DNA of 63,785 nucleotides, filler included, from Lenisia limosa (lineage: Eukaryota > Protista > Breviatea), in the NCBI GenBank assembly GCA_001655205.1. It is 15 parts of 15 records of this genome, joined end to end, with 100 filler letters (N's around TTAATTAATTAA, not from the genome) between each part and the next. Parts side by side here need not be neighbours in the genome. Positions count along the whole stretch, not along the records: positions 23,387 to 30,269 come from LPNZ01011632.1; 14 more parts are not named here. One strand, 5' to 3'. The position numbers and the translations under genes are program-made. Under the pieces are notes generated by a model. That model was not told where the DNA came from. It was given only the letters and a program-made list of their open reading frames with translations, and made no database searches. Positions within the stretch are counted from its first letter, which is position 1. Every line of letters begins with the position of its first letter. Below are positions 23,168 to 30,369 of this stretch, piece after piece.

Positions 23168-23617
23168 GTAATAATGGATAATGGGGGTGGGTTGTGCTTA
23201 ATCAAAAGTAAGTTGTGCAGCACTCGCCCCTCACTTACCCCCTAGTTTTACATGGGACAAACGATGACCGTTACACTGAGCATTGANNNNNNNNNNNNNN
23301 NNNNNNNNNNNNNNNNNNNNNNNNNNNNNNTTAATTAATTAANNNNNNNNNNNNNNNNNNNNNNNNNNNNNNNNNNNNNNNNNNNNCAAAAAGAAATAAG
23401 CAAAAAAAATAAATAATAAAAAAATAATAGTAAGAAATAACAACAGAAAAAAAAAAGAAAGAAAAAAAATATTTGCTCCCCAAGGTCTATTATGTCCAAT
23501 TTTGTTGGAAATCCTCAACTTGAATAAACATTTCTAAAACAATTTTAACAAATTTCGGAGATATTTCTTTCCCACCATCTTTCTCACCCCCTTATTCACC
23601 CTCTCCCCCCCAGCCAC

Positions 23618-26600
23618 CTGGATCGGAGAAGTCACGTGACCGAAAATCGATTCCGACAACTCTCCTCCGCCATTTGCAAAAGACGCCAACGATCCGACAA
23701 GATCTCTCTGTACAGTCTGGGGTGTCATTGGGGCTTCACTTCAGTTTAAAGAGCAGTAAACATCGATAATTTTCGAGGATTTATCGAGAAATTCAGTCTT
23801 TTTTTGAGCCGAAGTGAAGCACAAGGTGTTATNNNNNNNNNNNNNNNNNNNNNNNNNNNNNNNNNNNNNNNNNNNNNNNNNNNNNNNNNNNNNNNNNNNN
23901 NNNNNNNNNNNNNNNNNNNNNNNNNNNNNNNNNNNNNNNNNNNNNNNNNNNNNNNNNAATAATCAACTACAACTTGGATATGTATGAGTGTGTACATGTT
24001 GCTGTGAAAGGATCTGAGCATGTTCCAATGAACAGTAAGAAGCAGTTAAACACCCGGAAATGTAGCACAACTGAGGAGTGTAAATCAGGTTCACAGGTAC
24101 GAGTGTAAGTAACATTCATCAACAGAATGATAATTTCATATCATATACATACATGTATATATACATACGTATAAATAATATGATATGATATACTTCTCTG
24201 GACTGTATTTATGTACTTTTAGTGAATTGAACACAAAAACAAACTCATTACACTCCTCATACCCCTGGGAGGGTCGCGAATCCACCGGAGAGAGACGTGT
24301 GCCCTTCGACAAGCTGGGCTAAAAAGGGGAGTAAAATGAAAGAAAAAATAAAAAAAATAAAAAAATCAACTGAAGGGGAGGTATGTGGACATATAGGTAC
24401 CTAAATGTTAAATTAATTTTACATTAATTGCATTAAAAATAACGGAGCCTTAGTAATAATGGAATAAAGCTCTAGTAAGAACTAGGGCTTCACTCAGAAA
24501 AAAATACCGTAAAAACTCAATAGTTTTCGAAGATATATCGAAATTCAATCTTTTACTTTCACCGAAGTGAAGCTCTAGTAAGAACCCTATCACTTGGGCT
24601 TCACTTCGAAAAAGACTGAATTGCTCCATAAATCTTTGAAAATTATCGATATTGTACCGATTGTTTCGAACCGAAGTGATGCCCAATCCCCCTCTCCTCA
24701 CCGAAAATTGGACGGGAAACAAGAACTTTTCTAGCCTCTCTAGTTTGGGACAAGATGGTGACACATTCACAAGCTATTGCTTCCTGTGGGGGGGGGGGGG
24801 NNNNNNNNNNNNNNNNNNNNNNNNNNNNNNNNNNNNNNNNNNNNNNNNNNNNNNNNNNNNNNNNNNNNNNNNNNNNNNNNNNNNNNNNNATATTATATTT
24901 CCATTTACCGGATATACATTTCAAACCAAAACAACAGTATAATGAAATAAATAGCTCTTACTTATCATAAATTTCAAAAAGATGTCAAATATCCCCCCCT
25001 CTAACTATGGCCTTTTCATTTGGCCAGTCCACGAGGGCGTTGACGGCAGCGGTCAGCGCCCATTCAAGGTAGGCTGCACCACTTTCGGTGTTCGGTGCTA
25101 GGGGGTATAATTGGAAAAAATTGACACAAAAATAACTACGGCTCCGTGCAATTAATTGGAAAAATAATTTCAAAATATAAAGTAGATCATTCCAGATACT
25201 TTATTTAAAAAATGGTGTCAATTAATTTTCTCAAAAAAAATAATTGCATGGAGCCCAACAAATAACAACACAAAAAAAAGCACAAAATCAACTATGTCAG
25301 CACCCGACAAACCAAGAGTCTGTAAAATGGACGCACAGATGGGTTCACCAGCGTTGTCTGTCGGTACTTTGTTAGAGGCGGCTTTGGCCTGGGCTGCAGC
25401 AGCCCTTGCCTTTGGCGGTAAACGGGAATTGGATGGTTAAATATAGATATGATATATGTAGTGGTTCCCTACGGTCAGGTCCGGACCGGTCACAAATGAG
25501 TGGTCCGGTCCAGTCCGGTCTTTTTTGCAATTATGGACGGTCCGAACCGGTCAGACCGTTCAAATAAAAGAAACAAAAGTGGCAAAAGAATACCCAGAGG
25601 AAAGAAAAAATGCACTTATTTGGGCTTGAACCCTTGGTCACAGTTACAAAAATTGCACAACAACTGAAACTGATCCGTGAAGATCCTTCCAGTGGCCGTC
25701 ATATCTTCTTCTTCCACTCCATGTCTTTCCTTTCAGACGCGTCCACGCTCATTGAATCGGTTGATAAGGAGTTTCAGAAAAAGGTAAACAAGGCACAACA
25801 ACCGCTTCTTTGGCAAAATGACTATAAGCCAGGCATGGTTGAGCGCATCCTCAACGAACCAGATTCGGTCAAGGTATTATTCGCAACTGAAGCTTACGGG
25901 ATGGTTGGTTAATAGGTTAAAGGTGATTACGTGTGATCATCACTCTAGGGTTTTAACGACAAGGTTTTCGACGTTGTCCATATCTTTGGTCACCACTGGA
26001 AATGATTGACCAGAATGCTGGAAGAGCAGGTTTGTATTACACATTAAGATTTCTTATCAGAAATATAATGTTTTCAGATTCTCACAAAGAGCACTGAGTC
26101 GCTCAATGTCATCGCCAAGTTCATCACTAACAACGGCGTTCTTGAAGCCGAGCAAGTGAGTGTTACTCGCTGGAGAAGTGGCAACGAGATGCGAAAGACT
26201 GTGATGCTGTTACTACCTACACTGCGCCAGCTTACAATTATTGCACCCTTTGAAGATATGCTTTCGTCGACAAAATTACCTTCGGCTGCCACACTCAAGA
26301 TCTGTGAAGAGCTCAACAAGGTGAGCGACTTAATCGATCAAGCCCACAATGCTTTTTGCAAGGAAAAAAACATCATTGCTGCTGCACACCTCATCCCTAC
26401 CCTACACCACCTTTACACCATGACTGAGATGGTTGAAACCATCAAGCTGACTGCAGGTGGAGAAGGACAGATTACCAAGACTAGAGCTGACGGAATCGCC
26501 AAGTTTGTTAACAAGTTTTGGCAAGACCTTGATACCAGACAAGAAGCAGAAGTTGACCTGACTGGTCCCTTTGCTATGGTGAGCATAAGTGAGGAAATAT

Positions 26601-29600
26601 TTTTGAAATACTTGTAATATATGATAATATATCATTATGTATATATTATGATTTGAAAGTGTCCTCTCATGTATATAGGCAATGGCTACATACCCTTCCA
26701 CAATGAGACTTGAGTGTCTCATCCCTGAGGACCGTGTGACTATGAAGGATGTGCTTCGGAAGCAGCTCTGTCAGTTTTGCCAAGAAAAGACTTGAAGAAA
26801 ACAACGTAAGAGGATTTCTAGCTCGGCCAGATGCCTAGGGTATTCCTAATCTTTGCATATAACATATGTGTAAGTCTTGAGCTAATTTTCTTAGCAATTG
26901 GAGACAAGCTCATCTGACGATGATGACTACGAAGATATCTTTGGGGTGCAAGAATCCGTTCCGGTTCGGACCGGTTCTGACCGTTCAAATTTTCGAGCGG
27001 TCCAGTCCGGTCCGGTCTTTTTGGAATAAAAATATGAGCGGTCCGGTCCGGTCCGGTCCGGTCCAGTCTTTGTGAATTTAAAAATGAACGGTCCGGTCCG
27101 GACCGGACCGACTAGGGACCACTAGATATATGTATTATATGTAAATGGAATAATTGATTTTGAATGGGGAAGTATACTATATTACGTTAGTAATGGATTA
27201 ATGATGATTATTCTGGGTTCAATATTAATTTAAGTGGATGATAGATAGCATGATTTTAATGGATTAAATTATAATATTGGGAGAAATGTTGCAACACATC
27301 TCATCCCTCTCCTCTACTCATCCGAGAAACAGTTATCTCTGATTTGTCTCTCTCCACTCCCCAGCCAGACGCCCACTTGAATAGGAGAAATAGCAGCAGT
27401 TGGGGTGACGTTCTCATTTGGAAGGATACAAGAACAGTAGGTTGCAATGAAACGCCGAGTGATGAAGAGAATGCGCTCCACTACCAGGGGGGAGAGACCC
27501 TGGGAAGTGAAAATGAAAATTTGTAAAACACTACGGCGCATCGACTTGGGATTCTTGGAAAAACGTTGGAATTCCCATATTTTTGACATGGAATACTATG
27601 GAATTTTATAGAATTTTGAAGAAATTTATCATATTCCCAAATTATATAAGGGAATCCCAAGTCGATGCGCCGTGGTGAACAAAGCACAAAATACTGCTTG
27701 GGAGGTGGCTATAAATTGCCCACTTAACCTGCAATAATGATGAAAAAACAAAAACCAACAACACTCAAACGCCCCCAACTCAACTCATAATTAATAAACC
27801 AAACAAATACAACCTCTCTAGATTCGGGCCATTGTGTTTCCCCAATTTTACCCCAAACCCCCAAACTTCATTTCCAGTTTTCCTGGTTTGCGAGTCGAAC
27901 TCAAAGAGGGCTTTGGAGGCCGCCAGAATGACCATAAGGGGGTTGGACGGTTTGGACTGAATTTCGTAAGTAGAGAGAAAGAAAGCAATTAATAATGATT
28001 TTTGTTTATGGTATCCCTATGTATTTATTTGTTTCCCTGGATTTCTAATGTATTATTTCTCTTGTTCAAAAAATAAAATAAAATAAAAAGCACTTGCAGG
28101 AATCTGACATGGCAATTAGTTTTCGAGTATTTATCAAGAAATTCCCTCTTTTTTTGGAGCGAAGTGAACCGCGCTGCAAGATGTACTTTACATGTACAGT
28201 GACCGGGATAAGTCTTGAACGATTGGTTATGCAAATTCCCATGGAGAATAGGCGTGTATATTATAACTACATACAGTGGCCGTGATCAGTCTTGACCAGT
28301 TTTCCATGGGAATTTGCATAACCAATCGTTCAAGACTTATCCCGGTAACTGTACATGTATATACATGTATAATATAACCTACAGTACGTACGTATTATTG
28401 ATCCCCCCTCCTCACCTTGACAAACATATTGATGGAGTGGATTGGGGCGACTCGTTCACCTTTTGGCTCATCCGAAATAATATGGGCTGGGTGGAGTAAA
28501 ATTGGACAATTTATGAAACAAAAAAGCCCAAATGAACTCTGTTGGCTGACAACACACAAGGGTTGAAAACAACAAAACAAACAANNNNNNNNNNNNNNNN
28601 NNNNNNNNNNNNNNNNNNNNNNNNNNNNNNNNNNNNNNNNNNNNNNNNNNNNNNNNNNNNNNNNNNNNNNNNNNNNNATTTTGCAACATTTGGTAGTACG
28701 GGAATTTAAAATTTGTTGTTTAACATTAAACAAATATTAATAGACAATATTGTCTTTTTACTCCTCTGTCACTCACGCTTTTACGAGATATAGGATTATA
28801 ACATATGATCTTCTTAATTCACCAACCATTTGCTGTGAAACTCTCTCACTCATAAAAAGTATTATTGTGCCCCCCCCCCNNNNNNNNNNNNNNNNNNNNN
28901 NNNNNNNNNNNNNNNNNNNNNNNNNNNNNNNNNNNNGCGCATTGGAAACTGCGCAGTTAAATACGGGAAAAAATAGAGGACGGTAAAGGGAAACAAAAAA
29001 ACAATAATCATATCACTCCTCACCCTGTCCAGTGGTAATAACGTCGTAATTTCGGCTGAGAATTCCGAGGAGTTCACTGAGGGACGCCTCTGGATCAACT
29101 CGGGCCAGAATACCGACCCTATGCAAATCCTCCGCGGTGGTGGTCTGGGGGGGGGGGGTAAAATTGTAATGACTTTCCCATAGTAATATCTTCAAAAATA
29201 TATAATTTAATGGTCATTTTGCTGTCCTAATGTCATTACGAATTAATTATATACAAAATAAACCGCTCCCAGCTCTCCACCAAAACGAACATCCTGCAAC
29301 TTATCCCAATAAACTACCTGGTCATCGAAGTCGTCATCGTCATCCAGTTCGTCTTTTGCCTCTTGTAGGCGAACTGCTATGATTTGACTCACCACTCGGT
29401 TCCTGAGGTAGGTTACAATATAATAGACATTCATATAACTATAAACCTATTTCAGCTTTAACAAAATGAACAAAGAAAACGCAACAACTGTCAAACACAA
29501 TCTATATAACCCCAAATACCCAAATACCCGTTGACGAACAACAAAAAACAAAAAAAAGACAATAAAAAACTCTAGTGAGGCATGGAAAGTCGCCAACTTT

Positions 29601-30053
29601 GGAATACGTCCNNNNNNNNNNNNNNNNNNNNNNNNNNNNNNNNNNNNNNNNNNNNNNNNNNNNNNNNNNNNNNNNNNNNNNNNNNNNNNNNNNNNNNNNN
29701 NNNNNNNNNNNNNNNNNNNNNNNNNNNNNNNNNNNNNNNNNNNNNNNGACTCTTACAACTATCGCTTCACTTTAGTTCAAAAAAGACCGGTCAAATATCG
29801 ATAGTTTTCGAGGATTTATCAGGAAATTCAGTCTTTTTATGAACCGAAGTGGTACACAATATTTAATGCGGTATATTATTTATCTTGTAAAAAAAGAACA
29901 TAATGTAGCATATCATATCACGTCATACGTCACAGAATCTGATAAAAAAAACCTCAAATAACAAGAATAAAATATGCCGTAATCCACCTCACGTATGATG
30001 AGATAAAAAGGCGCGAACGTCGTCAGGAATGCGGCCACAGACCCCAGTACTGG
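23618..30053 (-). CDS. XPO4: Exportin-4 (importin-beta family), internal portion, >=12 exons
   Basis: Collinear exons: NRVVSQIIAVRLQEAKDELDDDDDFDDQ, DLHRVGILARV, HIISDEPKGE, GLSPLVVERILFITRRFIATY, TESGAAYLEWALTAAVNALVDWPNEKAI, TVQRDLVGSL. These match exportin-4 segments (acidic loop, L..VGxLxR, D..GE, LSP...W...TY, W..E..L). Confidence 0.75.
24483..24577. mobile_element. hAT-type MITE family A (A1); adjacent second copy at 24593-24686
   Basis: Perfect 8-bp TSD GTAAGAAC. Confidence 0.85.
25140..25256. mobile_element. Unclassified AT-rich MITE (family I)
   Basis: Ends GGCTCCGTGCAATTA / TAATTGCATGGAGCC. Second copy at 31032-31154; fragments near 55170 and 63412. No clear TSD. Confidence 0.55.
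25610..26029 (+). pseudogene. RecQ-type SF2 helicase C-terminal (RecA2) fragment inside the hAT element
   Basis: RHIFFFHS (motif IV-like), VKVLFATEAYGM|G spliced over a 45-nt GT-AG intron (25904-25948), FNDKVFDVVH, then after a 1-nt frameshift WSPLEMIDQNAGRAG (motif VI). Confidence 0.75.
26078..26960 (+). pseudogene. hAT transposase remnant (TRW motif and helical insertion domain; catalytic ends missing)
   Basis: VSVTRWRSGNEMRKTVMLL...KICEELNKVSDLIDQAHNAFCKEK..AAAHLIPTLHHL...KFVNKFW...FAM|AMATYP follows the hAT TRWxS / E..E...P / KL.KY / A..LDP layout. It has a stop codon and runs into the right subterminal repeats. Confidence 0.75.
27529..27677. mobile_element. CACTA/CMC-like MITE (family F)
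   Basis: 26-bp TIR CAC(T/C)ACGGCGCATCGACTTGGGATTC with one mismatch, flanked by AA/AA; second copy at 62830-62953. Confidence 0.7.
28197..28351. mobile_element. Tc1/mariner-pogo-type MITE (family E), long form
   Basis: About 49-bp TIRs starting CAGTGACCGGGATAAGTCTTGA (1 mismatch); TA target duplication on both sides. Confidence 0.85.
28487..28584 (-). repeat. Family B repeat ending at an XPO4 3' splice site
   Basis: ...CAACCCTTGTGTGTTGTCAGCCAACAGAGTTCATTTGGGCTTTTTTGTTTCATAAATTGTCCAATTTTACTCCACCCAG|exon. More - copies at 25098, 29145, 48164, 51091, 51553, 52367, 54345, 54547 and 62985. Confidence 0.85.
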
Positions 30054-30369
30054 CTGGGAAGTCAGAAATGTGCATTGTGATGTCGAAATGTGGACGTGTT
30101 ATCATTCTTTTTTTTTTGAACCAAAAATTCGAAATAGAATTAGTACTGCGATTATTGTTCTAAATAAAGATTCAAAACCCTCCCCCATTTCAGCCTTCAC
30201 CCTCGTGTATTGTTAGCCAACAGAGTTAGACATTTTATTTTTCATAAATTTTCTAATTTTACCCCCCCCNNNNNNNNNNNNNNNNNNNNNNNNNNNNNNN
30301 NNNNNNNNNNNNNTTAATTAATTAANNNNNNNNNNNNNNNNNNNNNNNNNNNNNNNNNNNNNNNNNNNN

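Follow-up and report, generated by a model that had tools for sequence, protein, structure and literature searches.

How an apparent fragment of a RecQ-like helicase came to lie inside a transposon with the anatomy of the hAT superfamily is the question raised by one locus of the breviate Lenisia limosa (assembly GCA_001655205.1). The locus belongs to a stretch of 63,785 nucleotides (hereafter the window) in which 15 parts of this genome are joined end to end. The piece analysed occupies window positions 23387-30269 (LPNZ01011632.1), and the element within it spans 25459-27124 (~1.7 kb). The element, of the hAT type, is new, decayed and non-autonomous; its cargo is unusual, as we know of no helicase fragments from hAT elements.

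Ends and target site of the insertion

A previous, sequence-only reading described a complete element with terminal inverted repeats (TIRs), an 8-bp target site duplication (TSD) and subterminal arrays, and this description is borne out: window 25459-27124 is confirmed as a complete insertion of hAT-type anatomy. The identical 8-mer GATATATG lies directly outside both termini, at 25451..25458 on the left and at 27125..27132 on the right. The duplication is perfect at 8 bp, while reading it as 9 bp results in asymmetric termini. The left TIR (25459..25491, + strand) has the core TAGTGGTTCCCTA, which starts at 25459, and extends over ~33 nt when gaps are allowed (inverted-repeat pairs I8 and I16). 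The right TIR (27092..27124, - strand) ends in ...CTAGGGACCACTA, and its reverse complement, ending at 27124, is TAGTGGTCCCTAG. The two repeats are imperfect, 29 of ~33 positions being identical in a gapped alignment with two small gaps. Both termini read TAGTGGT(T)CCCTA..., and their TAGTG start conforms to the YARNG with which hAT termini typically begin.

Short CGGTC/GGTCC repeats form an array at each end. The left array (25472..25560; direct-repeat families D1-D2) comprises putative binding sites for a transposase of the BED type, and the right one (26955..27111; families D1-D3) consists of three units of ~42-50 nt. The leftmost 122 bp hold eight copies of CGGTC/GACCG and the rightmost 184 bp hold 14, compared to two in the 1360-bp interior and five in the 5.2 kb of flanks, so that the terminal 122 and 184 bp hold 22 of the 29 copies of the piece. 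The element combines the features expected at this level of a hAT transposon: its target duplication is 8 bp long, its inverted repeats are short, imperfect and start in the YARNG manner, and its subterminal clusters are asymmetric. The same end architecture, with asymmetric subterminal repeats that are bound by a BED finger in Hermes, is described for hAT elements (PMC10368747). The target preference nTnnnnAn reported for Hermes (PMC10368747) is not followed by the duplicated 8-mer, in which positions 2 and 7 are A and T, respectively, whichever strand is read; at a single site, this criterion is weak.

An 8-bp duplication next to a 7-nt inverted terminus is by itself a modest signature, which arises in 6.8% of dinucleotide-shuffled contigs, and three more trivial cases of this kind are present in the AT-rich low-complexity DNA of the contig. 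A chance origin of the TIRs and the TSD was rejected despite this rate, and the element is regarded as real because of its longer terminal repeat and its end-confined arrays, rather than because of the minimal signature.

Coding remnants in the interior

The interior contains five exon-like blocks (E1-E5), all on the + strand and separated by four short AT-rich introns, in agreement with the claim of coding parts in one orientation with GT-AG introns. Canonical GT..AG borders are found at 4/4 introns, and the GC content is 44-48% in the exons and 23-38% in the introns. The presence of such short GT..AG introns indicates that the element is eukaryotic. GC content and GC at third codon positions (GC3) are nearly equal in E1 (0.45/0.50) and E3 (0.47/0.51), and the present lengths of E1, E2 and E3 are all divisible by 3. 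Antisense coding was considered and rejected, the antisense open reading frames having no Pfam match at E ≤ 10. The blocks were searched exon by exon, and the Pfam and PDB searches reported below used the same threshold.

The first two blocks carry the helicase remnant. E1 (25610..25903, +) has 98 open codons up to a GT donor and covers a RecA2-type helicase domain between HIFFFHS, a strand similar to motif IV, and ATEAYGM, with which motif V begins. Intron 1 (25904..25948, +; 45 nt, GT..AG, 38% GC) contains in-frame stops and splits motif V, which is restored in frame when splicing joins ATEAYGM to the GFNDKVFDVVH of E2 (25949..26029, +). After a 1-nt frameshift at ~25990-25996, E2 continues in another frame with motif VI, QNAGRA(G). 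Thus, the RecQ-like motifs IV, V and VI that had been proposed on the strength of ATEAYGMG and QNAGRAG are present in E1-E2, with V and VI in the expected order and spacing, across intron 1 and one frameshift. RecQ proteins are characterised by motif V, ATxAFGMG, followed by a VRFV(I/V)H strand and by motif VI, QExGRAGR; VFDVVH in E2 stands where this consensus has VRFV(I/V)H. In shuffled controls, a motif V-like pattern appeared in 0/1000 sequences and a motif VI-like pattern in 0.2%, which places the motifs of the element well outside chance expectation.

Neighbours found with protein language models point in the same direction. The ESM Atlas feature neighbours of E1 are Helicase_C clusters (0.92), with all ten best named matches belonging to this one family, and 9/10 of its structural neighbours are Helicase_C as well. 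The top feature clusters are fragmentary eukaryotic helicase-like proteins from Basidiomycota. The helicase call is therefore based on motifs, language-model neighbours and structure neighbours. Sequence searches gave no comparable result: neither E1, an extended E1 nor the motif VI frame matched any Pfam family, the Helicase_C profile not being recovered; the PDB search with E1 returned chance matches and no helicase; and tblastn of E1 against plasmids detected no helicase at E ≤ 10. AlphaFold2 single-sequence models had a mean pLDDT (predicted local distance difference test) of 46 for E1 and 44 for E3, which is too poor for fold searches.

Together, these data led to the acceptance of E1-E2 as a putative RecA-like domain with motifs IV-VI, i.e. 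the C-terminal half of a RecQ-like superfamily 2 (SF2) helicase that is very divergent. Because Pfam and PDB detect nothing, the piece does not appear to have been copied recently from a conserved cellular RecQ, and it looks like the fast-evolving kind of helicase that is carried by selfish elements rather than like a housekeeping RecQ. The RecA1 domain with motifs I-III and the zinc-binding and RQC modules of RecQ were not found in the element, E3 having two cysteines and no Pfam match to RecQ_Zn_bind or RQC. Since both the RecA1 half and the C-terminal modules are missing, the helicase piece is a fragment at most. The idea that E3 might contain the C-terminal modules was rejected, as it has neither a cysteine cluster nor a Pfam match.

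The helicase remnant is followed by an intron-like spacer (intron 2; 26030..26077, +; 48 nt, GT..AG, 23% GC), which combines a phase 1 donor with a phase 0 acceptor. As E2 terminates in phase 1 in the motif VI frame and E3 starts in phase 0, this junction is probably non-native, and the two parts do not splice in frame, as previously noted. E3 (26078..26578, +) consists of 167 open codons, contains the motif VTRWRS and is predicted by AlphaFold2 to be all-helical, with low confidence. Its frame stays open over window 26078-26614, i.e. 179 codons, and a frame of at least this length occurs in 1.7% of shuffles. Intron 3 (26579..26678, +; 100 nt, GT..AG, 24% GC) joins E3 in frame to E4 (26679..26805, +; 127 nt), which has phase 0 at both ends in frames that differ, with a frameshift at ~26770-26790. 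Intron 4 (26806..26894, +; 89 nt, GTAAGA...TTAG) leads to E5 (26895..~26955, +), which contains the acidic run SSSDDDDYEDIFG. The frame of E5 runs directly into the right subterminal repeats, indicating that coding sequence downstream of it has been deleted.

The sequence-only reading took the second part, on account of its TRWxS motif, as a hAT transposase segment. This assignment found no homology support in Pfam, PDB or 1.84 billion representative proteins. Pfam had no match for E3, E4 or E5, and the proposed scan with hidden Markov models (HMMs) for Helicase_C and hAT/Dimer_Tnp_hAT thus yielded no match for any block. The PDB, which is expected to include the Hermes transposase, returned chance matches and no transposase for E3. 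In an exhaustive HMMER search with E3, the 1.84 billion representatives contained no real relative, the hits being E3 itself and a bacterial SprB-repeat protein; the latter was rejected as spurious, since its score was summed over eight occurrences of a 29-residue repeat. A TRW-type motif arises in 8.4% of shuffles, so VTRWRS is weak evidence alone. The ESM Atlas neighbours of E3 are unnamed clusters or clusters with RAG1 ZnH2/ZnC2, none of them helicases, and provide a lead only.

hAT transposases have a TRW block, a helical insertion domain and an acidic pre-dimerisation stretch, and the layout of E3-E5 fits this order. Considering how far TRW lies from the block that follows, the acidic run ahead of the expected dimerisation domain, the hAT-type shell, the open frame and the helices, it is somewhat more likely than not that E3-E5 represents the middle of a hAT transposase, with E3 perhaps covering the insertion-domain region. 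By the sequence comparisons made, E3 is a true orphan, suggesting that the lineage of its host or of the element has been poorly sampled.

Upstream of E1, only subterminal repeats are found and no first helicase half, and downstream of E5 there is no dimerisation domain. The copy carries two frameshifts, one in E2, where the frame of motif VI differs from that of motif V, and one in E4. Because of these frameshifts and of one or more non-native junctions, the copy cannot give rise to a functional protein; it is dead and non-autonomous. The frameshifts were absent from the sequence-only reading, the support for which is weaker than it implied. Its description as a deletion derivative holds in so far as this is an internally deleted, non-coding hAT-type element with a remnant of a RecQ-like C-terminal domain; the transposase identity of the second part did not fare equally well and rests on layout.

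Origin of the helicase fragment

The favoured explanation is a dead, non-autonomous cut-and-paste transposon of the hAT type that would have inserted into AT-rich, repeat-dense DNA. Its mobility would have depended entirely on a transposase supplied in trans by a related autonomous element, and this enzyme may have recognised the TAGTG termini and the CGGTC subterminal repeats through a BED-type finger, as in Hermes. The helicase piece would have been taken up as DNA, introns included, either through template switching in the course of gap repair or through a nested insertion and subsequent deletion, and a different gene or element carrying a helicase could be its source. Such capture is tentatively preferred, at a little under an even chance, over inheritance from a helicase-encoding hAT parent, because the helicase and E3 parts do not join in frame, because a single-parent model needs three separate deletions and because the searched literature contains no report of a RecQ helicase coupled to a hAT transposase.

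Ds-type derivatives of Ac, which arose by internal deletion, and the ends of Hermes, hobo and Tol2 share the 8-bp duplication, the short imperfect repeats starting with TAG, the end-specific subterminal repeats and the non-functional interior remnants, whereas the element described here differs from non-autonomous hAT elements in having no recognisable hAT transposase domain and in carrying a helicase fragment. In Pack-MULE-type transduplication and Helitron capture, intron-retaining genomic fragments likewise lie between intact ends as non-functional pieces of different origin that are out of frame with each other. In contrast to these cases, no donor gene is identified here, and such capture is much less documented for hAT elements.

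Several observations weigh against a captured helicase fragment in a hAT shell. The helicase call has no support from HMM or BLAST searches, which covered Pfam, PDB, plasmids and those proteins that are 55-175 aa long, and the hAT assignment is based on structure, no hAT protein domain being detectable in this copy. Neither a parental gene, a donor element, a second copy nor any full-length or partial relative was found in the protein index, the HMMER set, the JGI contigs or IMG/VR. In detail, a word-index search of 5.8 billion proteins at comparable length returned for E1 and E3 only their own products; the DNA pattern of the terminus had 0 matches in JGI metagenome contigs; a protein-guided scan of these contigs with E1 revealed no relatives; and the scans of IMG/VR with E1 and E3 gave the same result. 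Finally, the location of all five blocks on the same strand, the uniformly short GT..AG introns, the matching GC/GC3 values and the orphan-level divergence of both parts are what would be expected from a single parent gene.

These shared properties also speak for deriving the copy by deletion from an undescribed hAT lineage. By analogy with AcademH and KolobokH, its autonomous members would encode a RecQ-like helicase, either as an upstream gene or in fusion with the transposase. E1-E2 and E3-E5 would then be leftovers of the parental coding region after several internal deletions. Such an origin is a real possibility, well short of an even chance. It would account for the E3-E5 layout of TRW block, helical insertion domain and acidic pre-dimerisation stretch, and for a helicase that is too divergent for a housekeeping RecQ and has fragmentary eukaryotic helicase-like clusters as its language-model neighbours. 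A precedent exists in related DDE superfamilies, which have recruited RecQ-type helicases at least two times, namely Kolobok (PMC9587614) and, in the case of a helicase, Academ (PMC10045372). The same derivation requires at least three deletions, and it is confronted with the out-of-frame junction of E2 and E3, the lack of a detectable hAT transposase domain, a TRW-like motif at the chance frequency given above, the failure to recover any relative and the silence of the searched literature on hAT elements with a helicase. A fragment of one non-transposase gene, of the host or of another element, that encoded a helicase with a helical C-terminal extension and came to lie in a hAT-type shell is unlikely. 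In that case, the TRW motif would be coincidental. This reading is compatible with the frequency of the motif in shuffles, with the lack of similarity between E3 and any transposase and with the adjacency of E1, E2 and E3 on the same strand, each of them a multiple of 3 nt; however, the phase of motif VI, with which E2 ends, does not match that of E3, E3 does not contain the zinc module of four cysteines found after motif VI in RecQ proteins, and its Atlas neighbours are not helicases. The assignment of the shell itself to P, Zisupton, Novosib or a similar superfamily that also duplicates 8 bp is very improbable, as the TAGTG start fits the YARNG of hAT ends. Terminal repeats that are short and imperfect, together with dense and asymmetrically arranged short subterminal ones, are, moreover, classic hAT ends (PMC10368747). 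Apart from the missing hAT protein domain, it is the deviation of the 8-mer from the nTnnnnAn preference of Hermes (PMC10368747) that would speak for such a superfamily, but this preference is weak and applies to only part of the hAT superfamily.

The two superfamilies with helicase-encoding members differ from the L. limosa element in several respects. KolobokH, reported only from fungi, carries a RecQ helicase placed downstream of its transposase domain, and Kolobok-1_CCri also encodes a RecQ helicase (PMC9587614). They resemble the present element in being transposons of the C/DxxH group of DDE elements that are associated with a RecQ-type helicase (PMC9587614). Kolobok, however, generates 4-bp TTAA duplications, while the duplication here, GATATATG, is 8 bp and non-TTAA, and the putative transposase remnant has the helicase piece on its upstream side; the features that define KolobokH are absent from the element. 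AcademH, an Academ lineage that encodes a helicase (PMC10045372; PMC10799480), is likewise a cut-and-paste DNA transposon with an SF2 helicase containing DEAD/Helicase_C domains. It differs by its 9-10-bp duplications (PMC10045372) from the 8 bp and the hAT-like ends found here. No Academ transposase was detectable in the element.

If the helicase were native to the parent, hAT would join Academ and Kolobok as a recruiter of RecQ-type helicases. hAT is among the largest and best-studied transposon superfamilies and is kin of the RAG1 recombinase, and a further recruitment, if true, would suggest that a helicase may give cut-and-paste transposition a recurrent advantage, e.g., in end processing or gap repair. 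The more specific proposal of a 'hAT-H' lineage with a divergent RecQ-like helicase in an unsampled eukaryote, which would be the third independent union of RecQ and a DDE transposon after Academ and Kolobok and of which this copy would be an internally deleted relic, is likewise a real possibility, well short of an even chance. At present, the evidence is a single decayed copy and constitutes a good lead for work on the full assembly, not yet a discovery. Both coding remnants are orphans, which suggests a poorly sampled host lineage or element family.

Composition and repeats of the surrounding DNA

The analysed piece is identical to the contig NODE_2531 of the ENA metagenome assembly ERZ3820729 (L001; 7172 bp, coverage 24), except for its runs of N. 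The five N runs (window 23833-23957, 24801-24889, 28585-28677, 28880-28936 and 29612-29747) are not assembly gaps. Their counterparts in L001 (912-964, 1808-1854, 5550-5619, 5822-5872 and 6548-6630) are ordinary sequence of differing lengths (47-83 nt), and most of these sites contain or come after a homopolymer run of 11-14 G or C.

The contig is AT-rich (30-37% GC) and repeat-dense, with dispersed repeats; outside the element it contains no convincing gene, an Rfam search of the contig gave no match, and its sequence does not resemble human DNA. The GC content is 41-46% in the element (window 25137-27136) versus 25-37% across most of the flanking DNA, and the composition of the element is thus distinct from that of its insertion site.

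One dispersed repeat ends in 12-13 G followed by TAAAATTGGAAAATTTATGAAAC and is present in both orientations in at least 6-7 copies within 7.2 kb (L001 364, 911, 1794, 5448 and 6081 on the + strand, 5792 and 7117 on the - strand; window ~23832, 24787, 28483, 29145 and 30234). It resembles the end of a small, abundant element. Another dispersed repeat, ~60-80 nt long and with the core TTTTCGAGGATTTATC..GAAATTCAGTCTTTTT..CGAAGTGA, has at least five copies in both orientations (window 23758-23832, 24498-24539, 24609-24666 (inverted), 28108-28186 and 29793-29871) and often lies beside the poly-G repeat. The two may constitute one family resembling miniature inverted-repeat transposable elements (MITEs) or short interspersed nuclear elements (SINEs). 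In addition, window 28189-28359 (L001 5154-5324) contains a near-perfect, foldback- or MITE-like hairpin, in which two 60-nt arms that are 97% complementary are separated by a 51-nt spacer.

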